A DNA stretch of 64,000 nucleotides, from contig CDROCS010000356.1 of the NCBI GenBank assembly GCA_977020255.1, forward strand, positions 310,001 through 374,000. Direction: 5' to 3'. This stretch comes from Obrimoposthia wandeli (Eukaryota). Below, in pieces: positions 14,120 to 62,351 of the stretch; the first letter of the stretch is position 1; each line of letters begins with the position of its first letter. The notes under the pieces were generated by a model. The model did no database searches. It had not been told where the DNA came from and saw only the letters and a program-made list of their open reading frames with translations. Position numbers and translations under genes: made by a program.

Positions 14120-15943
14120 TCATAAACTTATTGTAAATTCTACACCATCGTATAGTTCATCTTTATATATAAATGTAGTATTATTTGTTTCTATCGATCC
14201 CCCCATTCCATCAACTATTAAGTTATATGTCATATGCAGACCTAGTCCTGTTCCTTGAGATTTATGTTTTGTTGTAAAATAAGGCTCAAATATATGAGGT
14301 AACACATCATTTGGTATACCTCCCGCATTATCTTTTATTTTTATAATTGTTTTCTCTTTAACTGCACTCGTAGAAATAAAAATGTATTTATTCTTTACTT
14401 GAGTACTAGTCAAAGCATCTTTTGCATTATTAAAAATATTTATAAGACATTGAGTTAGTTCATTTTCATAACCATTGATTTTAATATCTGAAGATAAATC
14501 TAATATTACATTTATTTGGTTCTTTTTAATACTTGCTTCTACTAAATGTAAAAAACTTTCTATTTCATTTTGTAAAGAGAATAATTTTTTATTTCTATCT
14601 CCTTTAATAAAGTTACGAAAGTCATCAATCGTTCGAGATAAATACTGAGCATTATTATTGATAATGTTACATGTATCAACAAGTTTATCTTCTTCAAATA
14701 CATTAAATTCTTTTTGTGTAATGATACCTGTAGATGCAGTTGAAATAACAGACAGTGGTTGTCTCCACTGGTGAGCTATATTTCCTATCATTTCTCCCAT
14801 TGCAGCCATTTTTGATTGATTAGCAAGTATTTGGTCTTGATGTTTATTTTTAATAATTTGTTTTTTCAAAGATTCTTCATTGTCGATAATTGATTTTTGC
14901 ATTACTTTAAAATCTTTTATTAAAATTCTAAATATTCTGTACTCGCTGTTAAGATTTTCATCAATTGAAGAAGAGTGATCTTTTGAAAATCGATTGATAT
15001 TTAGAGTTAATATTTCAAGAGGATGGACAATACTCTGAGTTATTTTTTTTGCACTCATAATTACTATAAATGCAATTATACTTATAGTGAATGTAATAAT
15101 TAAAATTGTATTAAATATATACGTATCAATATCATCATTATTCTCTTTTACAACAATTGTCCATGATAAATTATTAAATTTTTTATAGGTGGCATAATTA
15201 TTTTTATTCGTGTTATTATTAAAATACTTAATAAGTTTCTCTTCTGGATTTTTTGAAATTGTATCTTTATAGAGTTTTGTAACAAAAAATGAATTTCTAT
15301 CTTTTACATTTGAACTATCAACAGTATCAAGTATGTATAAACCATTTTTATCTACAATTAAAATACTGATATCACTAATTCTCGATGGGTTTAGATTAGA
15401 TATTAATGCGTTCATAAAATCTAAATTTAATTCAACAATATAAATTTGATCATTAAACTTAAAAACATACGAAACCAAAGGGATATCAGAAAGACTTGAA
15501 AAATAAATATCGCTTAAGTAATCTTTTTTTTCTTCTTGATATTTTTTAAAAATATTTTTCTGAGAATAATCATATCCTGGAAATACTTTTATTCTTTTCT
15601 TAGAAGAAATTTCTTGAATAATACCATTTTTATCTAAAATCATAATCGTATCAATAGAATGTTTGTATTTTAGTATATCTTCAAATATTTCTTTTCTTGT
15701 ATGACTACCAATCTCTTTCAATAATTCAGGAATAGATTTAATCTCTTGATTAAATTTATTTATATTATATTGAATGTTTTGTGTTATATTAATATGCTCT
15801 GAAAAAATCAAATCATATTTTTCTTTTATCAATAAAAAAACAAAAATGAGGCTCAATAGTACTAAAGGAAGTATAGAAAATAATAAAAATTTTCGATATA
15901 GATCTTTTTTAAATAATTTATTTTTTTTTACGATTTTTTGCAA
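14120..15943 (-). CDS. Sensor histidine kinase with periplasmic Cache-like domain
   Basis: 2 TM segments; H-box IAHQWRQPL; NIFNNAKDA, DNAGGI, FEPYFTTK, GTGLGL. Confidence 0.9.
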   Translation of the reverse strand: MQKIVKKNKLFKKDLYRKFLLFSILPLVLLSLIFVFLLIKEKYDLIFSEHINITQNIQYNINKFNQEIKSIPELLKEIGSHTRKEIFEDILKYKHSIDTIMILDKNGIIQEISSKKRIKVFPGYDYSQKNIFKKYQEEKKDYLSDIYFSSLSDIPLVSYVFKFNDQIYIVELNLDFMNALISNLNPSRISDISILIVDKNGLYILDTVDSSNVKDRNSFFVTKLYKDTISKNPEEKLIKYFNNNTNKNNYATYKKFNNLSWTIVVKENNDDIDTYIFNTILIITFTISIIAFIVIMSAKKITQSIVHPLEILTLNINRFSKDHSSSIDENLNSEYRIFRILIKDFKVMQKSIIDNEESLKKQIIKNKHQDQILANQSKMAAMGEMIGNIAHQWRQPLSVISTASTGIITQKEFNVFEEDKLVDTCNIINNNAQYLSRTIDDFRNFIKGDRNKKLFSLQNEIESFLHLVEASIKKNQINVILDLSSDIKINGYENELTQCLINIFNNAKDALTSTQVKNKYIFISTSAVKEKTIIKIKDNAGGIPNDVLPHIFEPYFTTKHKSQGTGLGLHMTYNLIVDGMGGSIETNNTTFIYKDELYDGVEFTISL

Positions 15944-48078: not shown

Positions 48079-48819
48079 ATGGCAACTTATATAGGAAAGT
48101 GTCTTTATTGTGAAGATGGAACTGTTGAATACGAATCTAAGCAAGTCAGAGGCAAGAAAACTAAAGTTTATTGCTGTAGTAACAATAAAGTAACTACTAA
48201 TGATGATGGAGATACTTGGGAGCCAACAACTGATTCAACTTGCTCATGGAAATTGTTTGGATCAAATTTAGAGAGATGGGGTAAAAAATTTATCGGTCCA
48301 AAAGAAGTTAAAAAACTTTTGGCAGGAGATGAAGTAATTGCGCATATGTACAGCTATACTAAAAAAGTAGAATATAAAAAATATTTAACAATATCAGAAG
48401 AATATGGAGTTTCGGTTCTTTGGGAAATGGATGTAGAGGAAGATGAAGATGAGGAAACTACCGAAAAGAAACCTTATAAAAAAGCATATCCGAAAAAAGA
48501 ATATCCAAAGAAGAAAAAACTTGAACTAGAAGAAGAAACAGAATACACTCCAATTGTTGCGCCTATTAAAAAAGAACCTGTAAAAAAAGTATTTGTAAAA
48601 AATAGAACTCAGAAGAAAAAGAGTACTGAAAATACATTTAGCAAAGAAGATATGGATTCATTGGTATTATGCAAAGATACTTCAAATGAATTATCTAGTC
48701 AGCCTATCTTTAATAAAAAGCATGTACAGGAAAAGACTGAAAAAGAATTTGTAAAGAGAGTATTTGTTAAACCTGTTTTTGTAAATAAAAAGTATACAGA
48801 TGTGGGAGCAGCATTTTAA
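48079..48819 (+). CDS. Zn-ribbon protein resembling topoisomerase C-terminal modules, with a low-complexity Lys/Glu tail
   Basis: IGKCLYCEDG, VYCCSN, CSWKLF, EEYGVSVLW; family assignment recalled, not searched. Confidence 0.5.
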   Translation: MATYIGKCLYCEDGTVEYESKQVRGKKTKVYCCSNNKVTTNDDGDTWEPTTDSTCSWKLFGSNLERWGKKFIGPKEVKKLLAGDEVIAHMYSYTKKVEYKKYLTISEEYGVSVLWEMDVEEDEDEETTEKKPYKKAYPKKEYPKKKKLELEEETEYTPIVAPIKKEPVKKVFVKNRTQKKKSTENTFSKEDMDSLVLCKDTSNELSSQPIFNKKHVQEKTEKEFVKRVFVKPVFVNKKYTDVGAAF

Positions 48820-48884: not shown

Positions 48885-48911
48885 CTAACTCATCGGTAAT
48901 GTTATAGTAAA
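48885..48911 (-). pseudogene. Displaced original C-terminus of the histidine kinase; contains the left att core GTTATAGT (48901-48908)
   Basis: Minus strand reads TTT ACT ATA ACA TTA CCG ATG AGT TAG = FTITLPMS*, matching FTITLPLS* at 59352-59378. Confidence 0.8.
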
Positions 48912-49004
48912 TTACATCATTTTATATGATAAAACATTAATACACCTTATATAACAGCTTCTTTCAAAATAAACAATTTTCCAAATTAAAAAACAGAGAT
49001 AAAT

Positions 49005-49024
49005 TTGGAACAATTTTGGCACAA
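49005..49024. repeat. Putative integrase arm-type sites, left end
   Basis: TTGGAACAA and TTGGCACAA, 11 bp period. Confidence 0.7.
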
Positions 49025-49058
49025 TATTATCTTAATAATAAAGGATATATTATGCAAT

Positions 49059-52000
49059 TTACTTGATTTCTATTATATCAAAGAGTTTTTCAATATTTTC
49101 ATCAAAATGACTTATTGTAGGTAAAACTTTTTTTGGATATAATACTTTAAATTTATTATTATGATATTGTATTATTTTATCTAATAATCCATAACTATCT
49201 GCTATTTTAATTAATTTTTTCTCTTCCTCTAATAAATTTGAAATATCATGTTCTTTCATGAAAGTGATTAAGTTATTTGTATATGTTTCATTTAGAACAA
49301 ACTTATAGTTTTTTCTATGTAATTCTATTGCTAAACTTTTGTACTCTTTAGATGATAACAATTCTCTTAAAAGAGCCATTGAATTACTGATAAAAATATG
49401 ATTAAATTTCATTGTTTTAAACAACATGTCAAAAATATTATTTTCTGAAATAATTTGATAGTTATGATTAATACAATATGCTAAAGCTAGATACTCTTGA
49501 GTTCCTATATGTGGTGCTAAATGAGAGTATGCTTCTTTTATTGGTAAATTTTCTGAAGTATCATCAATTATTATACATTTTAAAATACTATTAATTATAT
49601 TCAATATTGAATTTTTAAATTTATCTGCTTGTTTAATACTGTCATCAGTATAAGGAATAAATTTATGTCCTGTTTCATCTAAGTATGTAAAATCTCGTGG
49701 CATCTTGGTATAGTCAATTTTAAGAGAATAATCTTTTAGCCAATTGATTAATGTTTGTTGAATTACTATATCGTCTCTTTTTAAAACATCATCTAATTTA
49801 CCAATTTTATGTAAAAAAACAATAGATGAAAGTGTTAAAATCTTTTTTCGTTCATTTGGTAGATAATTTATAGATAAACTATTAAAATTGATATTTTGAG
49901 TATTCAATAAATATGGTATTAAAGTAAAATAATTTTTATAGTCTTTATTTGCTAAAGCGTATAACCCTTGAAATTTATTATCATTATATCTTTGAAATAA
50001 ATCTTTTGTATGATTACTTTGATTATCCATAAAATTAAATAATTCAGAAAATGGTTCATCACTATTTTCATCAATCTTTATAGGAATCATATTTGGATTT
50101 TCACATCTAAAGGCAAAAGGTCCAGTAATTCTATGAAATAAAGATTCTTCTTTATATTTATCATCTTGTTTTTTTAAAAAATACTCATTGTCATCAATAG
50201 AAATAAATCCAAAATTATTTGCATTACCTTGTAAAATATTATAATTATCTATAATATAAGTTTTTCCATCGTCTACTAAGCATAAATTAGTACTATAAAG
50301 AAATATATCTTTGTAGTTTGATAATCCAAATTGTGTCTGAGTATATATAGTTGAAAACTCAATTTTAAAGTTATTTTCTAAGTTTTGAATATCTAAATTT
50401 AATAATTTTTGATTAACTATTGGTAATATTTGTCTTGTATCTTTTAAAATGTGTATAGAATACATTAGTATAGTAATTAAATTATCAAAAGTTAAATTTT
50501 CTTTTTCAGCAATTAGTGAATTGAAAATTTCTTGTTGCTTATCATTTTCAATAATTTTATGAGATTTATTATAATAGTCCCAAATCACTTGTAACATTAC
50601 AATCATAATTTCAGTATTTGGATTTTCTTTATATTCTAAATAGTAGTAATCAAATGCAATTTCTGGTTTATCGTGTTTTACATAGATATTTCCAATTATA
50701 GCACTATAGTCATATTTATTATCAATACTATTTATGAAGTATTCAAAATCTTTAAAATATAAATCCTTATCTTCAAAACATATTTTTAAAGTGTCAAATA
50801 TTATTGTATTAAATATATTTTGTTTACTTAGTGCTAAATCAATATATTCTTTTCTCTTGCCTAGTTTATTTAGTAATTTGATTACATCAAAAGTCTTAGC
50901 TTGCATAGTATTATCGGCTAAACTTAATTCTATAAGTTTTTGAATATCTTCATCTGAAATTTGGTTTCTTTCATAATAGGATTGTTCTATAAAGGATAAT
51001 AAAGTTTCTAAATCATTGTATTTATTAGTTTTTAAATATTCTATTATTTCTTTTTTAATTACATCATTAAGAAATATTTTACCTTTAATGTAGCTATACA
51101 TAATGAAACTATGTTCATATACAAATTCATTATTCTGTTCTAAAAAAGTTACGATTTCTTTGATATCTTTTTTTGAATTAGTGAAAATGAAATTACAATA
51201 AAAAAGTAAATCATTTAACTGATAATTTTTTAAAATACGTTCTTTGATTTTTTTATGTTCAAAATCAATATTTTTAATACTACAATATTGGACATATTCT
51301 TTTATATCTAATCTTGCTTTATTATCTTCATAAAACTTATAATAATCATCTTCGAGTCCAAGATATATAAGTATTTGAATATAACTTTCAATTGTAATAT
51401 TTATATACTCATTATTAAAATATTCTTTATTTTCAAGGACAACATCTAATGATTTTTTATATTCTTTAACATTAAACAACAAATCTTTTTTAGGTATTTT
51501 ATTTAATGTATTCATATTAAGTATATAAGTAGCATAAAATCCTTGAACTTGTAACTTATCAAGAAAACTTAAATTGTCTTTATCAATTGCTTCTTTATAA
51601 TACATATCTGCACAGTTAAATATTTCAATATCGTTTTTTGTATATTCATATAAATTAGAATAAATATGCCCACCAATTAATAATAGATGCTTTCTATATA
51701 TTGTGTTTTTTATCTCTTCTACAAATATTTCTTTTGCTTTATTTAAATCTCCACTATTTAAATAAAATGCAATATCAAAGTGCCCTTGTGGTTTACTATT
51801 CGGTGTATCAATTCTTATCTGTTTTGATAATTCAAAAAACTCTTTATTTTTATTAAAAGCTATTAATGTTAATTTAAATTCTTGAAATTTAGTACTATTA
51901 TCTTTTTTTAATTCATTGCTATATTTATTTTCAATTAGTTCAATTAATTCTTCAAACTCATCCATTTTTCTGAACTGTAGTAAAAAACTTATTTTTAAAA

Positions 52001-52217
52001 GTAATAATTAATATTTTATAGTTTTTAATGCTTCACTATTATTATCTTCAATTAATGAATTTAAGTCGCTAATTGCTTGCTTAAAATTACCATCAAAGAA
52101 ATCTTTTTCTACTCTTTTAATAGATACATCAATTTTCGGATTAATTGAAATATTGTTAGTTTGGGTATTATTTCCAAAGTGAATGAAATTTTTTATACTA
52201 TTAAACATTTTAATCAT
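49059..52217 (-). pseudogene. Large helical-repeat protein with C-terminal PIN-like domain (~1052 aa), split by an in-frame TAA at 52008-52010
   Basis: KTIKY*LLLLKISFLLQFRKMDEF is one continuous frame; C-terminal KKILTLSSIVFLHKIGKLDDVLKRDDIVIQQT and EYLALAYC..IISEN are PIN-like. Confidence 0.65.
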
Positions 52218-52381
52218 TGACTGCTATCATTGTTTTGATTTACATTACCAATTGAAAATATTGAAAAAAACTTATTTACTTGCTTATTGTCTTTTGTAAT
52301 TCTACAAATACCAACACCTAAAATAAAACTCAGTATAAATCCTATTATACTAGCCCAGCTACCTATATCTGATAATGACAT
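52214..52381 (-). CDS. Small single-TM protein, 55 aa, translationally coupled to the PIN-like gene
   Basis: MSLSDIGSWASIIGFILSFILGVGICRITK...; AAGGA SD; its TGA overlaps the ATG at 52217 (ATGA). Confidence 0.65.
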   Translation of the reverse strand: MSLSDIGSWASIIGFILSFILGVGICRITKDNKQVNKFFSIFSIGNVNQNNDSSQ

Positions 52382-52588
52382 ATTTATATTTTCCTTTTTT
52401 GTAAAAATAACTTAACTTACCAGTTTTAAATATAGTAAAGTATTAATATATATTATTTCTTTTATAATTAAAACAACATAAATAAAGGTAGTAAAAATAT
52501 AATAAATGTATATTTTAAAGTACTAAAGAATTCTATAGAATCCTATGATATTTATATTGATACACAACAAAATACAAATTATAGAAAT

Positions 52589-54346
52589 TTATGTTATATT
52601 AAATCTATCTATAATAAATTTCATTTTATGTTTATATTTTTCTTCTTTAGATAACTCTTTATATACATTTATAATATTTTTATACATAATATTAAAAGGC
52701 TTATCGCCTGAAAAACCATTAATCCAAGATATAAATTTAAATACTATTTCAAAATATTCTCTATCCTTTATCATCCATTCATGATGTTGATCAAATGATA
52801 TTGCTCCTAATAAGTCTTCAATTCCATTATTCCAACCTTTGCTAGATAATAATTCACTTAGTTTAATTTTAATATTTTCAATATCATTTATAGTATCTTG
52901 AGTAGAACTATTTTTTATTTCATCATAATATTTTTGTAGTTCTTCATAATTATCTAATACTCTATCAACACTTTCCTTTGTAAACATATCTAAGTCTTGT
53001 AGTGAATTAATATTATTTTTAATATATAATTTAGATTTTTCAATAAACATACTATTATATTTTTCAATTTCTTTATTATCTAATTCCTTTAAAAAATTAG
53101 TAATATAAAATTCAAAACTTGATAGTCCAACTAATTGAACTATATCGGTATCTTCTGTATTTAATGCATCATAAAATTCTTGTACAAATTGTTTATTATC
53201 ATATTCCAAATCATATAAATATCTAAAATAAATTTTATCAATATCTTGATGTGTTTTTGTATTTTTTTCTTGAAGATTAATACTCATATTAAATTTATAT
53301 ATTTCATCTTTGAAAAAGTCTTTATTTAATGAATGCTTTTCAACAATATTTTTAAATGTATTATCATTTTTCATCTTATAAGGTATTCTTATTTCTATAT
53401 CTAAGTATGTTAAATTTAATTTTTCATTTATTATCTGTTTAAAAATTTCAAGGGTAACACCATTCTTTATTTTTTTATTTATTTTTTCATCTTTTAATAT
53501 ATCTTCAAGTAACTCTAGTTTTAAAATTACCTGCTTCATAAGTCTTATATTTAATCTTTTATTGCCATTCTTATCCAATAAATCAAATAATTTTTCTAAT
53601 AATTCCCAATTAATATAATCTTTATTTTTATTTTTATTTTTAATAAATTTTATATTATCTTTTAAGTGTGGTTCGTACTTAAGTGTAATATCAATTATTT
53701 TCTCACTATATTTATCAAAAATTTCTTGATTATTTGTTTGAGTTATAAAACTCTTTTGTGTGAAATTATTATCTTTATCTTTTTCCATAAGTTTTTTATG
53801 ATTTAATTCATCTTGAATTTTAAGCATATCATTATTATTAATTAATACAATTTTACAGCTATGTTGTTCTTTAAGTTCAGATATAAAGCCTAATATTTCA
53901 GATAAACTAAGATTTGGTGATATTCTTTCAAAGTCATCAAAGCAAAGTACAATATTTTTAAACTCTTTCTTATCTATAGTTGATATTATTGCCCCAACAT
54001 CAACTCCCAAGACACCAGAACCAACTAATCCTTTCAATTTATGAGTGATTTTAGATATATCTGATATTTCCATTAATATTTTACTTTTAATTTCACCTAG
54101 TGTATTAATACCAAACAATGATATATTTACAAACTTATCACCTTGTTCTTTTCTTTCAATGTAATGATTCCAAAAAAATGTTTTACCTATACCCCAACTT
54201 CCTTGAAGACTTATTACAATACCCTCTTTATTATCTAAATTAATAAGTTTATCTAATTGTTCAATGAGTATTGTAATTTCTTTACTTGTATATTCCATCT
54301 TTTCTTCCTTATTTTTATTAAAAAAATTATTAAAAAATTCAATCAT
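52589..54346 (-). CDS. KAP-family P-loop NTPase
   Basis: ISLQGSWGIGKT, NISLFG, LCFDDFER, EKIID. Confidence 0.85.
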   Translation of the reverse strand: MIEFFNNFFNKNKEEKMEYTSKEITILIEQLDKLINLDNKEGIVISLQGSWGIGKTFFWNHYIERKEQGDKFVNISLFGINTLGEIKSKILMEISDISKITHKLKGLVGSGVLGVDVGAIISTIDKKEFKNIVLCFDDFERISPNLSLSEILGFISELKEQHSCKIVLINNNDMLKIQDELNHKKLMEKDKDNNFTQKSFITQTNNQEIFDKYSEKIIDITLKYEPHLKDNIKFIKNKNKNKDYINWELLEKLFDLLDKNGNKRLNIRLMKQVILKLELLEDILKDEKINKKIKNGVTLEIFKQIINEKLNLTYLDIEIRIPYKMKNDNTFKNIVEKHSLNKDFFKDEIYKFNMSINLQEKNTKTHQDIDKIYFRYLYDLEYDNKQFVQEFYDALNTEDTDIVQLVGLSSFEFYITNFLKELDNKEIEKYNSMFIEKSKLYIKNNINSLQDLDMFTKESVDRVLDNYEELQKYYDEIKNSSTQDTINDIENIKIKLSELLSSKGWNNGIEDLLGAISFDQHHEWMIKDREYFEIVFKFISWINGFSGDKPFNIMYKNIINVYKELSKEEKYKHKMKFIIDRFNIT

Positions 54347-54389
54347 TCTATTCCCATATGTAAAATTTACTATTTATTTTGTTAGATAA

Positions 54390-54761
54390 CTAACGTTTGA
54401 AATAATCCAATGCTTCTTTTGTAATACCTTCTTCATATTTATTTTCAATTAAAAAGTCAATAATATAATCACTGTAGCATATAATTGTAGTATCTGATTT
54501 TTTTATAAATTTAGTAACAAACTTTGAAATTAAAGCATTGGAAATATATACATATTGATCAAGGTATAAATCTAAGGTACCTATTACAATTGATTCAATA
54601 ATTTCATTTTCTTCTGTAAAAAATACTTTCCTCATTTCTTGAGAATCTATTGAAATTACACGAATTGATTTATTATTATTATCAATATCTATTTCTATAC
54701 TTGTACATCTTGGGTATAGTACACCTTTTAGTTGATTAAGTTTTATCATAATATTCTCCAT
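54390..54761 (-). CDS. Hypothetical protein
   Basis: 123 aa ORF directly upstream of the KAP gene, same strand. Confidence 0.55.
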   Translation of the reverse strand: MENIMIKLNQLKGVLYPRCTSIEIDIDNNNKSIRVISIDSQEMRKVFFTEENEIIESIVIGTLDLYLDQYVYISNALISKFVTKFIKKSDTTIICYSDYIIDFLIENKYEEGITKEALDYFKR

Positions 54762-54793
54762 CGATTATTTGTGTGTTGCATAAATTCTATCAT

Positions 54794-54893
54794 AACAATG
54801 TCACATTTTCTGTCACATTTCACTAAAGTATTCGAGATTATTTGATTTATTTAATACAATAATTTATTTTGTGACAAATTCAGTGACATTGTT
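54794..54893. promoter_or_regulatory. Inverted pair of tandem TGTCAC repeats
   Basis: TGTCACATTT at 54799 and 54811; GTGACA at 54871 and 54883; AACAATGTCAC / GTGACATTGTT form the outer inverted match. Confidence 0.6.
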
Positions 54894-54952
54894 TCTATAC
54901 AATATACTCAGTATTTTTATATAAATAAAGAATCTATCTATGAGGAAAACAA

Positions 54953-55957
54953 ATGGACAATAATAATGAAATATTTGAATTATTTGAATTATCAAAAGAA
55001 AAAGATAGACTTTTATGTAAAGAAAGTATAAAAGCTTTAAGATCAGTAGTATACATTCCTGAATCAAAACCTCCAAAAGATGAAGAAGAACTATACGATG
55101 CATATATAAACACACTCCAAAAACATAATTTAAAAGATAGTTTTCCAAGTCAATTACTCAGTCCATTTTATAAACTTTCCAAATATGACAATATTAATCA
55201 ACATAAAAATCATAAGTATTTTATCAAACTAGACCAACTCTTAAGATATTTAAAACACCACCAAGATATACTCAAAGAACATACAAATACTCACAAAGAC
55301 GCAACTCCTAATACTTCATATAGTACTACAGAAAAGTATGTTGATCCTCGAATAAAAAGTATAGTTGATTTTATACATAATTTAAAAGTAAACTATGCAG
55401 GTAATGATTTAGAAAATGATAAAACATTACTATCAGTTCAAAAAACAGAAAAAATTTTAAATGTTTATAAAAAGTATCCTTTGTTTGGTTCTATGTTAAT
55501 TCAAGCATCAAATAATAATGATTTTAATTTTATGACAAAGGAATATAAAACTGAACTACAAAAAGAACATAAAAATATCTTTTCATCTAAGATTAAACTG
55601 TCCAAAAGAGATATAGTAAAAAGTTTTCAATCTTATGCTATAGATATTTATCATGAATTATCTGTTCAAAATCAACTTATGATAAATCCTAAAAAAGAGA
55701 TAGAAAAGAAAGAACTAGTTAACCTAATAGGAGAAATCTCAAAACATCTTTTAGATGAAAAAGTAGGTAAACTTCATGTGAAAAATATTAATTCAAGATT
55801 TTATTATATAGATATTATAAATAATATGATGATTTTACAACCCTCTACAACTAAAGTATCAAGATTCAATTTTAACGTATCTAATAACTTATTAGATGAT
55901 TATCTTAATGACGTATTATTAAAACTAGATAAATCTATAATGGATTTAGAGAAATAA
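54953..55957 (+). CDS. Hypothetical protein of the element backbone
   Basis: 334 aa ORF with GAGGA SD; no recognised motif. Confidence 0.6.
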   Translation: MDNNNEIFELFELSKEKDRLLCKESIKALRSVVYIPESKPPKDEEELYDAYINTLQKHNLKDSFPSQLLSPFYKLSKYDNINQHKNHKYFIKLDQLLRYLKHHQDILKEHTNTHKDATPNTSYSTTEKYVDPRIKSIVDFIHNLKVNYAGNDLENDKTLLSVQKTEKILNVYKKYPLFGSMLIQASNNNDFNFMTKEYKTELQKEHKNIFSSKIKLSKRDIVKSFQSYAIDIYHELSVQNQLMINPKKEIEKKELVNLIGEISKHLLDEKVGKLHVKNINSRFYYIDIINNMMILQPSTTKVSRFNFNVSNNLLDDYLNDVLLKLDKSIMDLEK

Positions 55958-56114
55958 CCTCTTTTTTATAGTTTACCAAATTTTCAAATCACTCAAATAT
56001 AACATACATTACAATTTCCTTATCGATAAACAATAAAGTGTAAAACGTTTTATATAACAGAAATGCAATCTGTTAACACCCAATGAGAATCAATGTATCT
56101 CAAAGGATTTTACG

Positions 56115-56369
56115 ATGGTTAAAGTACAAGGAACAATGATTAATTTTATAAATAGTGGTACATACAAAGGCGAAAATGGAGAAGTGCCAACTAAGGCAAA
56201 GCTTCAAATAATGTTTGATGTAAATAAAGCTAATGGAGATATAGAAAAAAAGCTTTTTAATATATCTATACCAGATGATAAAATTCCCCAGTACAAAGAT
56301 AAAGTAAATAAAGAAGTAATTGTAGATGTTGCAATCATCTCTCAAGCATACTCTTTCTACGGTATTTAA
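56115..56369 (+). CDS. Small beta-rich protein, likely ssDNA-binding (gene V-like)
   Basis: 84 aa, strand-rich; lies immediately upstream of Rep as in rolling-circle replicons; AAAGGA SD. Confidence 0.55.
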   Translation: MVKVQGTMINFINSGTYKGENGEVPTKAKLQIMFDVNKANGDIEKKLFNISIPDDKIPQYKDKVNKEVIVDVAIISQAYSFYGI

Positions 56370-56394
56370 AATAGGTTTGTTCGAGCCTCGCATG

Positions 56395-56496
56395 GTAAAA
56401 AAACTCAAACGTCAGGCTTGATTTTTTTACAGGGAAGTGAGAACAAAAAAATTATAGGGAGGGGGATTTCTTAGTAACACCCCGTTCTAAACGTCA
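56395..56496 (+). other. Putative double-strand origin / oriT hairpins
   Basis: GTAAAAAAA..TTTTTTTAC stem (56395-56430); GGGGG-ATTTCTTAGTAACA-CCCC (56461-56483); AAACGTCA twice; directly upstream of Rep. Confidence 0.45.
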
Positions 56497-56508
56497 AAAG
56501 GACAAAAT

Positions 56509-57830
56509 ATGAATAACATTAAAATGATACATGGTATTGATACACTTCATTACTTTTGTGAATCAAACGAAAATTACGACGACCTATTTTTAGATATATT
56601 AGACCAAATGGAAGAACTAAAAGGTAAATTTGAAAAAAAAGAAATAGAATATGAAAATTCAGATATTTATATTTCTATAGAACAAGTTGCATTTAACTAT
56701 TCAGGAAAGGCAGAAGGTTTTTATTGGTTTAAAAATATCAATGATTTCTTTCAAATAGGTTTTAAAAATAAAGCTACAAATAGAGGATTAAATGATATTA
56801 GAGTACAACTTTTAGGAATTGGAATTTATACAGTAGGTCTTAAATCTCTAATAGAGTTTATAAACAAAAGTTTATTAGTAAACTATATCACACAAGATCA
56901 ACAAGTTACTAGAGTAGATTTAAATACATTTATACAATATGATTTTAAATTTCTTACTAGAGATATGTTTGTTACAAGAAAAAGAAACTATTCTACAATA
57001 GCTGAAATTGGTAACTCGCAAGAGATACAAACAATCTACATAGGTAAAAAACCATCATTATTAAGACTTTACAATAAACAACTAGAACTTAAAAATTCTA
57101 ATAAAAAAGATTTGATGTATGAGTACTTTTTAAATCATGGATTTGATATAGAAGATAATATCTTTAATATTGAGTTTGAGATGCATAGAACACATTTAAA
57201 ACAATACAATATCAAAACTATTGATGAACTATTGCAAAATGCTGTACAGCTCTTTAAAACGGGTATGGATGATATACAATTAATAGATACAAGTACCTTA
57301 TCAGATAATGCAATTAAACATAATAATAAAAATAGAGCTGTAACTCTTCCAATATGGGAGCATATACAACAATCTTATAATTTAAAAGATTTTTTACAAA
57401 CTGCTTTACCACTAGAACGTATCAAAAGAAAAGTATATATATATATGATGATAGAAAATTTAAACTTGAAATGATAGCAGTACTTAGACGTGCATTTATC
57501 AACAATCTTATAATTGAACCTGAACATCTTGATTATTATTACTTTGAAGCTAAAAACTCATTGAAAAAAACAACTACAAATAAACAGATGAAAAAAGTAT
57601 ATGAAGATTTACCAAATTATATCAATGAAGATGGTAAAAAAGAGAAAGCTAGAATACTTGAAGATAATACAATCATCAAACCAGTTAATGTAGTGAGCGT
57701 GAATACCCTTGGTGATTATGATTTAACTATGTATTTAAAGAAACTTACTAAAAATAGAGATATATCTAAACATGATTATAATTTATACTCTGTTGCTTTT
57801 AATGAATCTAAATCAAGAGGTTTATTATGA
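56509..57830 (+). pseudogene. Rep_trans-family rolling-circle initiator/relaxase, split at a (TA)6T run (57434-57446)
   Basis: GIDTL, VTRVDL, TIYIGK..LLRLYNK, NIEFE; removing one AT gives KVYIYDDRKFKLEMIAV and a 439 aa protein. Confidence 0.7.
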
Positions 57831-58135
57831 ATAATCCATTTTCAGAATTAGCAGAACAATTAATTGCTATTAGTCTTAGACTTGAAACAATAGAATCAAA
57901 AATTAAAGAAGAAAAAAGATGGTTAAATATAAAAGAAGCATCATATTATCTTGGATATTCTAAAGACCATTTACATAAACTAAAAAATGAACACTTTATT
58001 GAAAGTAAACATTATCATAAAAAAGCGGGTCGTGTTCTCTTTGATAAAATTGAACTTGATAACTGGGTTACGCTATCAGTTAATATGATTGACCCTAAAC
58101 AAATTGCAAATGAAGTAATAAAAGATTTAACATGA
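57827..58135 (+). CDS. Excisionase-like HTH protein
   Basis: RWLNIKEASYYLGYSKDHLHKL, GRVLFDKIELDNWV; directly upstream of the integrase. Confidence 0.8.
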   Translation: MNNPFSELAEQLIAISLRLETIESKIKEEKRWLNIKEASYYLGYSKDHLHKLKNEHFIESKHYHKKAGRVLFDKIELDNWVTLSVNMIDPKQIANEVIKDLT

Positions 58136-58199
58136 TTTACAGTAGAATAATTATGTTTGAAAGAAGCAGTTATTTTAAGGTGTTATCTAAGGAGATAAC

Positions 58200-59279
58200 A
58201 TGGTTAAGATGACACAACCTAAACTTTATCCTAGAGGTAATAAACTCTGGATAAGATTTAGTTTAAATGGTGAAGTGATTAAAAAGTCACTCAACATAGA
58301 AGATAATAAAGCTAATAGAAAATTAGCTACAACACAAATAATTCCACAAATGATATTAAAAGTTCATAGTGGAGAGTTCTTTGAAAATACAATTGTTCCT
58401 GACGTTAAAGAGATGATTGATATTAGTTTATCAATGAATCAATCTAGTAGAAAGTATTTAACACATAGAAGTTATGAATTGGTATTGAATAGGTATGTTA
58501 TACCTTTATTTGGTAAAAGAAAGATAGATAGTATCAAGCCAAGTGATTTAATTGAATGGCAAAATAATCTTTTAAAAACTCTTTCTCCCAAATCTGTGAT
58601 AAATGCAAGAATTATATTTCATGGTATATTTGAAGATGCTTTTAGAGATGAGATTATTTCTAAAAATCCATTTTCACTTGTGAAAGCTCCCAAGTTAGCA
58701 CATGCTAAAGATATCAAACCATTTACTAAAGATGAGATATTTTTAATACTTGAAAATACACCTGATAAAATAAAAGCCTTTTTTGCAATAGGTTTTTTTA
58801 CTGGACTTAGAACTGGAGAGATTACAGCATTACGATATAGTGATATTGATTTAGATAAAAAGATTATCAAAGTTACTAAAACTAGAAATAAAGGAATTGA
58901 AACAGTTCCTAAAACATTATCAAGTTTTAGAGATGTAGAGATACTTGATGTTCTTCTTCCTTATCTTGAAAATCATATTGAAGTATTTAAAAAATCTAAT
59001 GATGATTATATGTTTCTTACAAAATTTGGTTTACCATATTATTCAGCTTCTAAAATATCTATAACATATTGGCAAAAGATTTTAAAAAAGTTAAATTTAG
59101 AATATAGAATTTTATATAATATGAGACATACATTTGCAAGTATGATGATAAGCTCAGGGGAAGATATATTGTGGGTTGCATCAATGCTTGGTCATAAAAA
59201 TGCAAATATTACATTACAAGCTTATGCTAAATATATTAAAAATGAAACAAAATCAAGAGGTTCTTTTTTATTAAATTAA
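58200..59279 (+). CDS. Tyrosine integrase with N-terminal arm-binding domain
   Basis: LYPRGNKLWIRF, TGLRTGE, YNMRHTFAS, LGH..ITLQAYAK. Confidence 0.93.
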   Translation: MVKMTQPKLYPRGNKLWIRFSLNGEVIKKSLNIEDNKANRKLATTQIIPQMILKVHSGEFFENTIVPDVKEMIDISLSMNQSSRKYLTHRSYELVLNRYVIPLFGKRKIDSIKPSDLIEWQNNLLKTLSPKSVINARIIFHGIFEDAFRDEIISKNPFSLVKAPKLAHAKDIKPFTKDEIFLILENTPDKIKAFFAIGFFTGLRTGEITALRYSDIDLDKKIIKVTKTRNKGIETVPKTLSSFRDVEILDVLLPYLENHIEVFKKSNDDYMFLTKFGLPYYSASKISITYWQKILKKLNLEYRILYNMRHTFASMMISSGEDILWVASMLGHKNANITLQAYAKYIKNETKSRGSFLLN

Positions 59280-59310
59280 ATAGAACAAACTTGGTACAGT
59301 TTTGGAACAA
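59280..59310. repeat. Putative integrase arm-type sites, right end
   Basis: ATAGAACAA, TTGGTACAG and TTGGAACAA at 59280, 59291 and 59302. Confidence 0.7.
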
Positions 59311-59329
59311 TTAAAATTAGGTGCTTCCT

Positions 59330-59350
59330 AAAAGCCTTATATAAAAGGCT
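59330..59350 (-). terminator. Element-encoded hairpin just after the restored kinase stop
   Basis: AGCCTT-ATATAA-AAGGCT followed by TTT on the minus strand. Confidence 0.45.
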
Positions 59351-59351
59351 A

Positions 59352-62351
59352 TTAAGACAATGGAAGCGTTATAGTGAACTCTGCTCCATTATAATTTTCA
59401 TTTTTATATTCATAATTTACATTATCAACTTCAATAGTTCCCTTCATACCATCAACTATTAGATTATAAGTCATATGAAGCCCTAATCCAGTACCTTGAG
59501 ATTGGTGTTTTGTGGTAAAGTATGGTTCAAATATTTTAGTTAATATATTTACTGGGATACCACCTGCATTATCTTTTATTGTAATAATAGAATTATTGTC
59601 TTTTGTTGAAGTAGTTATAAATATAAGTCTATTATCTCTATTATTTTCTTTTAATGCATCTTTTGCATTATTAAATATATTAATTAGACATTGACTTAAT
59701 TCATTTTCATATCCATCAATTTTCACATTTTCTTCTCTATTTAGAATTATCTGGATATTATGTGTTTTAATAGAACTATCTATTAAGTGTAAAAAGCTAT
59801 CTAACTCATCATTTAAATTAAACATCTTTTTAATTCTATCACCCCTTATAAATCTTGTAAAATCTTCTATTGTTTTGGAAAGGTATTGTGCATTATCATT
59901 GATAATATTACATGTTTTAATCAGTTTTGTTTCATCTAGGACACCATATTCTTTTTGCATAGCCATACCTGTTGATGCAGTTGATATTATAGATAAAGGC
60001 TGTCTCCATTGATGTGCAATATTCCCTAACATTTCACCCATAGATGCTAATTTTGATTGTTCAAACATCAATTTATCATTCTCTTTTTTTTCCGTGATAT
60101 CTTGAATAAATCCAATTACTTTAATAGGATTACTTTTTTCATCAAACTCAACTTTTCCAATAGAAGAAAGAATTTTTGAAGTGCTTCCATCGTAGGTATT
60201 GATTTCATATTCTAAATTGTACTCAGTGCCTTTTTCAATTAGATTCACTAAGGCTTGATGGACACGTTTTTGTTCAATTATACAACTTTCAACTAATTGT
60301 TCTGAAAAAATACTATCATTTTGGGGAATACCAAAAATTATTTTAGTTTGATTAGAACCCCAAAAGTTTTTAGATTCAATATTATATTCCCAACTTCCTA
60401 CATTACCTGCAAGTTCAGCATCTTCAAAACGTTTATTACTTAAAAGTAAAGCATCTTCCTGAAGTTTTTCATCAGTAATATCAGAAAGTATTCCATGCCA
60501 TAAAACACTTCCATCTTTCATTTTCTCTGGTTTTGCCTTGCCATGAATCCAGCGAATACCCTTTTGTGGTAAATTAACTCGATACTCTATATTCCATTCA
60601 TTCATATATGTTGATGAATCTTTAATAGTTGATATCATCATTTCTAAATCATCTTGATGGATTCTACTAAATGCAGGTGTTGCATCATCAAGTAAAACAT
60701 CAGGGGATAGTTCATACAACTCTTTAATACCCTTACTAATATAAGGGAATGAAGCTTTACCATCTGGGTAAAGTCGATATTGATAAATAACACCAGGAAC
60801 ATTATCTGATAATTTTGCTAATAAATCATTACTTTTTTGTAACAAGAATTCAGCTTCTTTACGTTTAGTTATTACACTGTAACTACCTGCCATTCGTAAT
60901 GGTTTATTCTCATTATCAAACTCGACAATACTCCCTTTATCAATCACCCAAACTATTTCACCATTTTTTTGAAATAACCTATGTTCTGAGTTATATATTT
61001 TGGATTTACCTATCAAAGTATCTTCCATTTTTTGAAGAACACTTTCTCTATCATCTGGGTGGATTAATGAAGTAAAATTTTCAATTAAATCTTTATCTTT
61101 CTCTAATCCAAGTATTTCATACCATTTATTATTATGATCAACATGATTAGTTTTAATATTCCAATCCCACGTACCTTCACCAGAAGCTTCAAGAACAGTA
61201 TCAAGTTTTTTTGCATTTTCAAATACTGCGGTATTTGCAAGTTCTAATTCTTTTTTATTTTTATTAATCTTTTTGGTATATTGGTTAATTTGATAATTTC
61301 TAACTAAAATTATTAGTATAATAAAAATAAATACTCCGCTAGTTTGGAATAATAATTTATAGTCAAGTGGTTGTTCTTTCCACTTTTGATTAAATAAAAA
61401 ATCTTTATATCGATTTTCTTCTTGGATTAATCCATAATTATTTAATATGTCATACCACCTATACAATTCAGGTTTATTGATATCCCCAATATTAAATTGA
61501 TTAAGTAGGAAAAGTTTCTTTATTTCTTGTGCTTCAAATAGTAAAGATGGAATCTTTTTTTTAAGTGAGTTATTGTATTTAGAATATATTATGGTTACTG
61601 TTTCTTTATTATTTTCCAAGGCATATTTCCATCCTTTATTAGTAGCATCAATAAAAGATTGAATTTTTACATCACCATATTTATCTATAGTTTTTTGTAA
61701 AGTAAACATATTAACAGCACCAGAGTTAAATCCATAATCTTTTGGATTTAATATATTATATTCAAAATTTTCATTTTGTAATTGATATAACTCATTACTT
61801 TTATATACCTCAATAGCATCTGTATTTTTATTTATTAAATCTTGAGCAAGATAAGTACTTTGAATGAATTTAATTTTATTATAATCAACACCTAAATGCC
61901 TAAACATAAAATCTAAAGGGGTATTCATAATTCTCTCAGGAGAAGACATAAATCTTTTATTTATCATATCTCTTGGGTGTTTAATAGATTTTGAAGTAGC
62001 AATAACTAATGGAGATTCTTTAAGGTAATTTGATAATAAAACTATATCTACATCTTGTCTTTCAATCATATACAAATTATCACTAATAGTAAATGTTGTC
62101 TTATTTTTCAGCATATCATCAATAGGTTTTGTATCGTTATTGAATTCTTTTAATTCAACATCAAAACCAATATCTTCATAATAACCTTTTTCTTTTGCTA
62201 TTATAAAGCCTGCATATTCAAATTGGTATTTCCAATTTAGTTGTATTGATACCTTATCCAGTGTGCTTTGAGCAAATAGGGAAAGATTCATAAATAAAAA
62301 AATGAGTAATATGTTCTTCAAATAAATCCTAATTTCAATATAATTTAACAT
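59352..62351 (-). CDS. Sensor histidine kinase: NMT1/THI5-like SBP, TM, multiple PAS/PAC, kinase core
   Basis: QLNWKYQFEYAGF; GTWDWN, GSWEYN; IAHQWRQPL; GTGLGL. Confidence 0.9.
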   Translation of the reverse strand: MLNYIEIRIYLKNILLIFLFMNLSLFAQSTLDKVSIQLNWKYQFEYAGFIIAKEKGYYEDIGFDVELKEFNNDTKPIDDMLKNKTTFTISDNLYMIERQDVDIVLLSNYLKESPLVIATSKSIKHPRDMINKRFMSSPERIMNTPLDFMFRHLGVDYNKIKFIQSTYLAQDLINKNTDAIEVYKSNELYQLQNENFEYNILNPKDYGFNSGAVNMFTLQKTIDKYGDVKIQSFIDATNKGWKYALENNKETVTIIYSKYNNSLKKKIPSLLFEAQEIKKLFLLNQFNIGDINKPELYRWYDILNNYGLIQEENRYKDFLFNQKWKEQPLDYKLLFQTSGVFIFIILIILVRNYQINQYTKKINKNKKELELANTAVFENAKKLDTVLEASGEGTWDWNIKTNHVDHNNKWYEILGLEKDKDLIENFTSLIHPDDRESVLQKMEDTLIGKSKIYNSEHRLFQKNGEIVWVIDKGSIVEFDNENKPLRMAGSYSVITKRKEAEFLLQKSNDLLAKLSDNVPGVIYQYRLYPDGKASFPYISKGIKELYELSPDVLLDDATPAFSRIHQDDLEMMISTIKDSSTYMNEWNIEYRVNLPQKGIRWIHGKAKPEKMKDGSVLWHGILSDITDEKLQEDALLLSNKRFEDAELAGNVGSWEYNIESKNFWGSNQTKIIFGIPQNDSIFSEQLVESCIIEQKRVHQALVNLIEKGTEYNLEYEINTYDGSTSKILSSIGKVEFDEKSNPIKVIGFIQDITEKKENDKLMFEQSKLASMGEMLGNIAHQWRQPLSIISTASTGMAMQKEYGVLDETKLIKTCNIINDNAQYLSKTIEDFTRFIRGDRIKKMFNLNDELDSFLHLIDSSIKTHNIQIILNREENVKIDGYENELSQCLINIFNNAKDALKENNRDNRLIFITTSTKDNNSIITIKDNAGGIPVNILTKIFEPYFTTKHQSQGTGLGLHMTYNLIVDGMKGTIEVDNVNYEYKNENYNGAEFTITLPLS
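59368..59375. other. Right att core GTTATAGT inside the kinase 3' end
   Basis: Identical to 48901-48908; encodes TIT of GAEFTITLPLS. Confidence 0.8.

Follow-up and report, generated by a model that had tools for sequence, protein, structure and literature searches.

A probable filamentous-phage derivative rebuilds a sensor histidine kinase gene at its 3′ end in Arcobacter-like DNA

A 64-kb stretch of contig CDROCS010000356.1 (assembly GCA_977020255.1, Obrimoposthia wandeli), hereafter called the window, was found to contain an integrated element of about 10.5 kb (48901-59375) at the 3′ end of a gene for a sensor histidine kinase (HK). The window is AT-rich, with a GC content of about 27%. Its relatives, which are named here by locus labels (L008, L012, L013 and so on, and the P0004 locus), are all Arcobacteraceae, and as judged from the sequences the host genome of the element is Arcobacter-like. 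The target gene, the two junctions and the integration genes are arranged as follows.

48885-48900, minus strand: displaced original 3′ tail of the kinase gene (L-P-M-S-stop) at attL
48901-48908, plus strand: attL core GTTATAGT, encoding T-I-T on the minus strand
48943-48954, plus strand: P′-arm box CACCTTATATAA, at a distance of 42 bp from the core
49005-49025, plus strand: left arm doublet TTGGAACA-N3-TTGGCACA (P′ arm), probably bound by the arm domain of the integrase
57827-58135, plus strand: Xis, a 102-aa excisionase-like protein with a helix-turn-helix (HTH)
58200-59279, plus strand: tyrosine integrase (Int), 359 aa, with an N-terminal arm-binding domain
59291-59311, plus strand: right arm doublet TTGGTACA-N3-TTGGAACA (P arm), immediately 3′ of the int stop codon
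59333-59350, minus strand: element-borne hairpin of 18 nt, 3′ of the new kinase stop codon
59352-59367, minus strand: replacement kinase tail (L-P-L-S-stop), supplied by the element
59368-59375, plus strand: attR core GTTATAGT
59352-62351, minus strand: target gene for a 999-aa NMT1-PAS-HisKA-HATPase_c sensor HK

The same core thus lies at both bounds of the element. The right copy closes the 999-aa kinase (minus strand) as ..GAEFTITLPLS-stop, and the HATPase_c match of this kinase reaches residue 998. The left copy and the remnant (48885-48908, minus strand) read TITLPMS-stop, in frame with the core, and the two tail stretches are identical at 16 of 24 bases. Joining the right side of the element to the core and to the left side gives an inferred attP that reads stop-F-T-I-T-L-P-L-S-stop on the kinase strand. 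Thus, attP is a mimic of the kinase tail. The TTGGNACA repeats stand at 11-bp spacing inside both ends (49005/49016 and 59291/59302), and the composite 21-mer TTGGNACANNTTTGGNACAAT occurs at just two places in the 64 kb, both of them element ends (0.00 expected). Arm-type repeats flank the core on both sides in the inferred attP, and they are kept in the relatives; the right arm doublet was found in every relative examined. The geometry is also kept. A CACCTT box stands at the same 42-bp distance from the core in the window, L012 and L013, the left arm doublet starts 103-104 bp from the core in the window and at the same distance in L013, and the stretch from the int stop codon to the core measures 85-90 bp in 8 loci and 66 bp in L032. 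A further repeat, CCTTATATAA, is present three times (48945, 59335 and 48055; 0.74 expected). Its left copy at 48945 is part of the CACCTT box, while the right one at 59335 forms the loop and stem of the hairpin after the new kinase stop codon. The stem of this hairpin is retained in relatives despite their differing sequences. A terminator scan found none within the element, and the hairpin fails the terminator rule of the tool; it is probably a weak terminator. Rfam gave no match on the element and no tRNA was found in the window.

The preliminary description of this DNA, made from its letters alone, had claimed the 8-bp core at both ends, the supply of LPLS-stop and a hairpin by the element with the displaced LPMS-stop left in frame, the 11-bp-spaced repeats inside both ends, and a repeat at 48945 and 59335. 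All of these were found again at the positions given above. Could the 8-bp repeat be a chance match and no element be present? The 8-mer alone is no commoner than expected, with 3 copies in the window versus 3.6 expected. This reading has hardly any chance of being true; it is refuted by the duplicated tail codons, the arm doublets, the conserved att geometry, the intact int and xis genes, and the empty sites of relatives described below. As for the third CCTTATATAA copy (48055), it lies just upstream of a gene on the left of attL (48079-48819) for a 246-aa Lys-rich protein that has Cys pairs at its N-terminus and matches no family.

The integrase matches PF00589 with 75.2 bits (cut-off 27.1; E=7e-21) and PF14659 Phage_int_SAM_3 with 35.1 bits (cut-off 22.6). 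Its N-terminus matches PF12167 Arm-DNA-bind_2 (23.9 bits; cut-off 22), the protein also matches phrog_1 (E=3e-58), and its translation shows the RHTF..LGH..Y motifs. Xis has a sub-threshold match to HTH_17 (22 bits) and a weak one to the phrog_66 excisionase, and its gene lies directly upstream of int in all relatives.

Do related integrases choose the same target? I found 291 integrase homologues, and the 120 listed are 47-93% identical to the integrase of the window. The survey of insertion sites covered every homologue for which DNA downstream of int could be obtained. It showed elements at equivalent codons in 11 distinct HKs, whose sensor domains differ (NMT1-PAS, dCache of two kinds, PAS_4, FIST-linked, CBS and others); the integrases of these elements are 63-93% identical to that of the window. 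The 3′ ends of these kinase genes abut int convergently, 46-185 bp (mostly 65-73 bp) past the int stop codon, and all the abutting kinases end with G-x-x-F-x-I-x-L-P plus 1-3 residues. The kinase-end loci, with the identity of their integrases to that of the window, are:

L008/L009/L017: 93%
L015: 85%
L016: 81%
P0004 locus: 77%
L012: 72%
L013: 70%
L048: 69%
L019: 68%
L032/L033 and L034: partial integrase

From the int stop codon to the core, the DNA of the window and that of L008 agree to about 96%, with divergence directly after the core, and the two kinases are unrelated. The combination of a 93% identical integrase and nearly identical att arms in two different HKs indicates recent movement. 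At the left junctions of L012 and L013, the displaced tails read VIELPISKK and TIELPYLN.., respectively. The kinase core of the window gene is common to more than 7800 proteins (E<1e-30) with many sensor domains. Among the 120 kinase-core matches listed, which are 45-72% identical, 97 have an end of the G..F.I.LP type and 19 have exactly FTITLP. Closely related elements can sit in many kinase genes because the final strand of HATPase_c is conserved over hundreds of paralogues. The preliminary description had proposed the terminal strand of the HATPase family as attB, and this now stands on 11 HKs, three attL tails and the empty sites of two relatives. These results support the conclusion that the integrase-bearing element takes the codons for the terminal strand of a multi-copy HATPase_c family as its attB and restores the gene.

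In a small integrase tree, the HK-targeting integrases cluster, while the remaining ones are on long branches. Elements with the same backbone and a distant integrase lie elsewhere: at a tRNA-Leu gene in L023 (45% identity), at the 3′ end of dnaX in a second element of L013 (35%), and at a further site in L046 (50%, Arcobacter nitrofigilis). The L046 integrase faces a 1.3-kb stretch without a called gene, tRNA or Rfam match. The second element of L013 (1-3839, the same as L014 10858-15276) belongs to the same 2.74-Mb genome as the kinase-site element of L013, and its gene set consists of a 359-aa protein, an 86-aa single-stranded DNA-binding protein (SSB), a 448-aa replication protein (Rep) and Xis. 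Some further observations concern kinases and junctions. In L018 (6035-6255; integrase 69%), the kinase side reads ..GVEF, a stop codon and then IELPLS-stop over 220 nt of sequence; this insertion seems to have removed the last strand of the kinase rather than repaired the kinase. A second HK-like gene of the window (14120-15943) has a 44% identical kinase core and a tail without F-x-I-x-L-P, and it is unoccupied. In L016 (3310-3500) and L020 (2044-2200), an extra small open reading frame (ORF) with Cys-x-x-Cys pairs lies between the int stop codon and the arm repeats.

Empty sites were found for two relatives. L038, which was reached via the Rho neighbour (a search with the racemase neighbour returned just the contig of L013 itself), has the same Rho-FIST-HK neighbourhood as L013 and is empty, while L013 is occupied. 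The L038 kinase of 408 aa ends with ..TIELPYLNYQTNQHKF-stop, which is exactly the attL remnant of L013, and the DNA then enters the left flank of L013. The attL and attR of L013 have CTC[A/T]ATTGTAAATTT in common. In the second case, L040 and L041 are empty and have the same ABC transporter and dCache kinase as the occupied L008, L009 and L042. Their kinase ends with ..SIILPL-stop and yceI follows directly, while the occupied allele ends with ..TITLPMS-stop. Both the occupied and the empty state exist within one metagenome sample (ERZ27248027). Thus, the empty alleles of L038 and L040/L041 demonstrate that members of the family have inserted, replaced the kinase tail and moved recently. By close analogy, the same may be said of the element in the window.

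What else does the element encode? The genes and sites between its cargo and xis are as follows.

56115-56369, plus strand: 84-aa OB-fold protein, candidate for binding single-stranded DNA (a gene-V-like role)
56461-56483, plus strand: hairpin a little upstream of rep, GGGG(G)-loop with TAGTAAYA-CCCC; candidate double-strand origin or nick site
56509-57474, plus strand: N-terminal part of Rep, 321 aa, with the whole catalytic domain including the Tyr of RxYNK
57433-57447, plus strand: uninterrupted (TA)n tract splitting rep, with 2 extra bases compared with L008 and L017
57471-57830, plus strand: C-terminal part of Rep, 119 aa, a separate ORF whose ATG overlaps the upstream stop codon (ATGA)

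The rep gene of the window is split into 321 and 119 aa by a +2 frameshift, while it is a single gene for 439-449 aa in relatives. The preliminary description had named a Rep_trans gene in the backbone; this identity is upheld by profile and fold comparisons, although the frameshift had been overlooked. In a direct comparison with Rep_trans (PF02486), the 321-aa ORF reaches 20.6 bits, below the cut-off of 29.6, and the intact homologues of L008, L012 and L013 give no match. A search of 1.8 billion representative proteins returned 269 Rep homologues, many of which are just about 350 aa long. A profile of 61 sequences matches the RepD-family structure 4cwe across the RIYNKK motif (E=2e-6), and Y188, K190 and E193 are invariant in the alignment. 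Among these 61 family members, 27 match Rep_trans (E<0.01) and 15 match Phage_CRI, the family of the filamentous-phage G2P. The AlphaFold2 model of Rep (pLDDT 89) was matched by Foldseek to 4cwe, 4cwc and 4cij (RepD, RepDE and RepSTK1) with E=3e-10 to 2e-7 and a probability of 1.0. From these profile and model comparisons I infer that the 440-aa protein would be a rolling-circle initiator of the Rep_trans type. The contexts of distant Rep homologues were uninformative in short contigs, except for a Zot-like fragment in L045.

The 84-aa ORF adjoins rep in 7 loci. The protein has no Pfam match; its AlphaFold2 model (pLDDT 82.7) finds nearly only SSB and PriB among the best 50 Foldseek matches, with modest E values (3e-3 to 3e-2), and the fold makes it a probable single-stranded DNA-binding protein. 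The spacer between this ORF and rep is 140 bp long. The hairpin upstream of rep is kept in four elements whose flanks diverge. On the other hand, the two intergenic spacers fold as single-stranded DNA no better than shuffled sequences (z-scores of -0.9 and -0.15, not significant), so that of the origin hairpins claimed earlier one is conserved across elements, while the folding of the spacers lends them no support. The backbone of SSB, Rep_trans protein, Xis and Int, as first described, was recovered from profiles, folds and conserved gene positions.

The fold and the Tyr of the RxYNK motif are shared with the Rep_trans proteins of plasmids (pT181 RepC/RepD and RepSTK1) and with the MOB_T relaxases of ICESt3, Tn916 and integrative mobilizable elements (IMEs) (PMC5714925, PMC6499999, PMC7563843). 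Like the MOB_T relaxases of IMEs and ICEs (integrative and conjugative elements), the Rep of the window is encoded on an integrative element beside Int and Xis. In contrast, it is 12-14% identical to the Rep_trans proteins of solved structure and carries about 120 additional aa as a C-terminal domain. Unlike the pT181-type and MOB_T proteins, it occurs in a Campylobacterota host and is paired with a small SSB of the phage type.

No virion, Zot, secretin, coat or conjugation genes were found in the element by Pfam and PHROGs scans, which agrees with the absence of conjugation, Zot and capsid genes noted in the preliminary description, and the rest of the 64-kb window likewise gave no Zot, secretin or coat match. 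Morphogenesis genes exist in a relative. L049, a contig of IMG/VR, has Zot/pI (E=3e-21), a pIV secretin (E=3e-33) and small transmembrane coat-like ORFs, along with a GPA/G2P-type Rep, a homologue of Xis and an integrase 85% identical to that of the window. From the C-terminus of Rep to Int, the proteins encoded by L049 and L015 are 100% identical (tblastn), and L015 runs on into a kinase ending with ..GAQFTITLPLS-stop. Thus, a genuine inovirus prophage uses the kinase-targeting module. L048 has the same GPA-type Rep, Xis and Int, its virion genes being replaced by those for a DEAD/MZB helicase of 1629 aa and a protein of 1191 aa, and in L045 a homologue of the Rep_trans family lies beside the Zot-like gene. 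Since a complete filamentous prophage has the same Int/Xis module, descent from a filamentous phage is the likeliest origin of the element. The shared module also speaks indirectly for the putative satellite or helper-dependent nature that the preliminary description had proposed. An origin from filamentous phages, or parasitism of them, would be consistent with these related loci.

It may be asked whether the element is instead an IME. The Rep_trans protein would then be a relaxase of the MOB_T type, with the conserved hairpin as oriT, and the type IV secretion system (T4SS) of a co-resident conjugative element would move the IME. Rep_trans relaxases are known from ICEs and IMEs of Firmicutes, and Int, Xis and one Rep_trans gene without transfer genes would be a fitting layout. 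However, MOB_T has been described from Firmicutes and not from Campylobacterota (PMC7563843, PMC5704250, PMC6499999), and neither a coupling protein nor T4SS genes are present in any locus examined. The G2P-like scores of 15 of the 61 Rep family members, the small SSB paired with rep, as found in the replication modules of inoviruses, the presence of the same Int and Xis on a phage with Zot and a secretin, and the phage GPA-type Rep swapped in by L048 likewise speak against it. I therefore regard an IME as unlikely.

The left part of the element is occupied by other genes, which differ among the relatives.

49059-51965, minus strand: 968-aa cargo protein
52008-52381, minus strand: two small ORFs that overlap, one of 69 aa and the other of 55 aa with a hydrophobic helix
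52589-54346, minus strand: 585-aa P-loop NTPase of the KAP family, a candidate for defence against phages
54390-54761, minus strand: 123-aa protein, the first gene of the leftward cargo operon
54781-54906, no strand assigned: imperfect 37-nt inverted repeat with TGTCACA/TGTGACA motifs, between the divergent genes for the 123-aa and 334-aa proteins
54953-55957, plus strand: 334-aa protein, 78% identical in L008

The KAP NTPase matches PF07693 (28.5 bits; cut-off 20), the PADLOC family PDC-S49 over its N-terminal half (E=4e-19) and phrog_4740 (E=7e-30). The 968-aa protein has no match in Pfam, PHROGs, PADLOC, NCBIfam or PDB sequences, the 69-aa and 55-aa ORFs have no family match, and the 123-aa protein has no significant match in family databases or PDB sequences. 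The 334-aa protein, also without a family or PDB sequence match, is unlike the L012 protein in the same position and thus falls outside the conserved backbone. The 37-nt inverted repeat is a possible operator of a switch of the element. In relatives without virion genes, the cargo includes AbiP2 (L012; E=2e-190), the Septu-like PtuA with an 800-aa ATPase (L008), a SIR2-NB-ARC-TPR protein of the SIR2-STAND type (P0004 locus) and, in L046, a Qat-like set that includes a KAP NTPase. By analogy with these relatives, the cargo would have a role in defence. L046 (Arcobacter nitrofigilis DSM 7299, CP001999 974116-995186) has the same backbone, and its set is KAP_NTPase-QatB-QueC-TatD together with an Mrr-like gene. 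The kinase-site element of L013 (6790-11160) is only about 4.4 kb long; it is without rep or SSB, and its cargo is no defence gene but a chemoreceptor with MCP-signal and CZB domains.

A fixed mobility backbone with a variable anti-phage slot is also the layout of the defence hotspots of P4-like satellites, PICIs (phage-inducible chromosomal islands) and further integrated elements (PMC9122126, PMC10201445). A tailed-phage satellite of the PICI or P4 type with a defence hotspot would share the size of about 10 kb, the terminal integrase, the variable defence cargo and the lack of structural genes (compare PMC9122126). Unlike these hotspots, the backbone of the window family is of the single-stranded DNA, rolling-circle and inovirus type, and the closest complete relative of Int and Xis is an inovirus. 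Neither a primase-helicase nor terS, capsid-remodelling or Psu/Sid-type genes were found with Pfam, PHROGs and NCBIfam. Thus, a satellite of tailed phages is very improbable here.

Taken together, it is probable, and I hold it with some confidence, that the window contains an integrative rolling-circle element derived from filamentous phages, existing either as a satellite or as a defective prophage and defence island, which repairs the ends of HK genes. The integrated structure, the kinase target and the gene repair are shown. The mechanism may be proposed as follows. Int (lambda-type, arm-binding) and the HTH protein Xis would recombine attP, which mimics the last eight codons of the kinase, with the DNA for the final strand of HATPase_c. 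Since equivalent codons, a stop codon and a hairpin come with the element, the kinase is left intact. After excision, the circle would be copied by rolling-circle replication (RCR) with the Rep_trans-type initiator, the hairpin upstream of rep and the 84-aa OB-fold protein. Transfer would depend on packaging by a helper inovirus if the element is a satellite, or would not take place if the element is a defective prophage that is retained for its role as a defence island. The variable left half would carry candidate anti-phage genes, which in the window are those of the KAP NTPase operon. The element family is common in Arcobacteraceae.

Several findings weigh against this reading. No close orthologue of the kinase of the window was found: a contig scan gave relatives of 30-59% and a protein search gave partial matches of 45-72% identity. 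Because no orthologue was found, the attB of the window itself is only predicted. As for the relatives lacking the element, which the preliminary description had expected to exist, both cases were found (L038 versus L013, and L040/L041 versus L008), although the identity of the L040 site with attP is AAATT, just to the right of the GTTATAGT core and not in it. The crossover may not be fixed to GTTATAGT by the L040 site, or the L040 strain may differ from the true recipient. The insertion sites of integrase homologues, from which the preliminary description had expected shared boundaries, agree in the 11 HK 3′ ends among integrases of at least 60% identity and clearly disagree in one locus, L052, whose integrase is 72% identical and whose site is an intergenic 22-bp repeat and not an HK.

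L052 3880-11170: third element in the genome of L013, with an int pseudogene, between gyrA and a DUF465 gene; the bounding 22-bp repeat is AAAAAAGGG(G)ACAAAAGCCTAAA

To these come the lack of circles and attP junctions (none of the fetched contigs overlapped at its ends, and IMG/VR has no junction pattern), the absence of detected Rep relatives from the IMG/VR, GenBank phage and PLSDB plasmid collections, and the status of PDC-S49 as a candidate defence family only, with partner proteins of the NTPase that have no matches. Furthermore, the window contains no helper phage, and with its rep frameshifted the copy in the window may not replicate. The split rep could be a decaying gene, a switch prone to slippage, or a sign that Rep is tolerated in two pieces.

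These last two findings, together with the int pseudogene of L052 and the shrinkage of the L013 kinase-site element with loss of rep, favour an immobile defence island. Here the element would be a defective filamentous prophage that has lost its morphogenesis genes and gained cargo, may still excise but has ceased to replicate or transfer, and persists as its cargo is useful. However, occupied and empty alleles of a 93%-related element exist in one metagenome sample, the same element type is found in two HKs, and Int, Xis and both att sites are intact in the window. In addition, the 321-aa Rep fragment retains the whole catalytic domain at a length close to that of many homologues. Such an island is therefore doubtful, though it deserves consideration. 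The other form of the preferred reading, that of a phage-derived element still able to move as a satellite, is a tentative proposal: the family would be an undescribed class of integrative satellites of filamentous phages in Arcobacteraceae, with the Int and Xis of the helper, rolling-circle replication, defence genes in exchange for virion genes, and HK paralogues as attB.

How does the element compare with known systems? Phage 21 and e14 integrate in the 3′ end of icd and carry a replacement end. Streptococcal ICEs and IMEs integrate in the 3′ ends of rpsI, rplL or guaA (PMC4701971, PMC5357655). The element of the window resembles the icd and streptococcal elements in its tyrosine integrase with arm sites, its crossover inside a gene, its tail-mimicking attP and its displaced remnant. 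In contrast, those gene-end elements have single-copy housekeeping targets, while the family described here uses a large paralogous family, with near-identical elements in different members. Neither the 3′ end of an HK gene as attB nor a described member of the element family was found in the searchable literature.

RS1 and TLC-Knphi1 are satellites of Vibrio cholerae filamentous phages and integrate at dif via XerCD of the host. Papers on TLC are among those cited in PMC12715192, and pDolos is a free RCR plasmid packaged by the Shewanella inovirus Dolos (bioRxiv 10.1101/2023.11.28.569023). Like RS1, TLC and pDolos, the element is small, encodes a rolling-circle initiator, lacks genes for morphogenesis or coat, and has a related complete inovirus in its host group. 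Unlike them, it has its own Int and Xis, a protein-coding gene as the target and about 6 kb of defence-type cargo, and its packaging by a helper is putative. Within the host family, the small islands ABGI2 and ABGI3 of Arcobacter butzleri RM4018 have a terminal integrase, direct repeats of 21-25 bp and a non-tRNA target, and the cargo of ABGI2 is a restriction-modification system (PMC2147049). ABGI2 and ABGI3 may be earlier sightings of the element family; the paper names no target gene and describes no replication module. In summary, the integration chemistry and the gene-repair logic are classical, while the target in a paralogue family and the inovirus-type, defence-carrying backbone are new.

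Integrases are usually viewed as specific to one locus, while the clade at HK ends recognises the coding sequence of a conserved protein motif of a paralogous family. Because the integrase recognises motif codons shared by paralogues, an element can occupy many sites and distant hosts and leave its target undamaged. If the family is indeed a class of satellites, each genome would offer dozens of interchangeable attB sites and the kinase would never be inactivated. The rule may be of use in predicting the boundaries of islands in Campylobacterota and possibly as a tool for multi-site integration. Finally, elements derived from filamentous phages may be vehicles of defence systems, a role documented so far mainly for the satellites of tailed phages.

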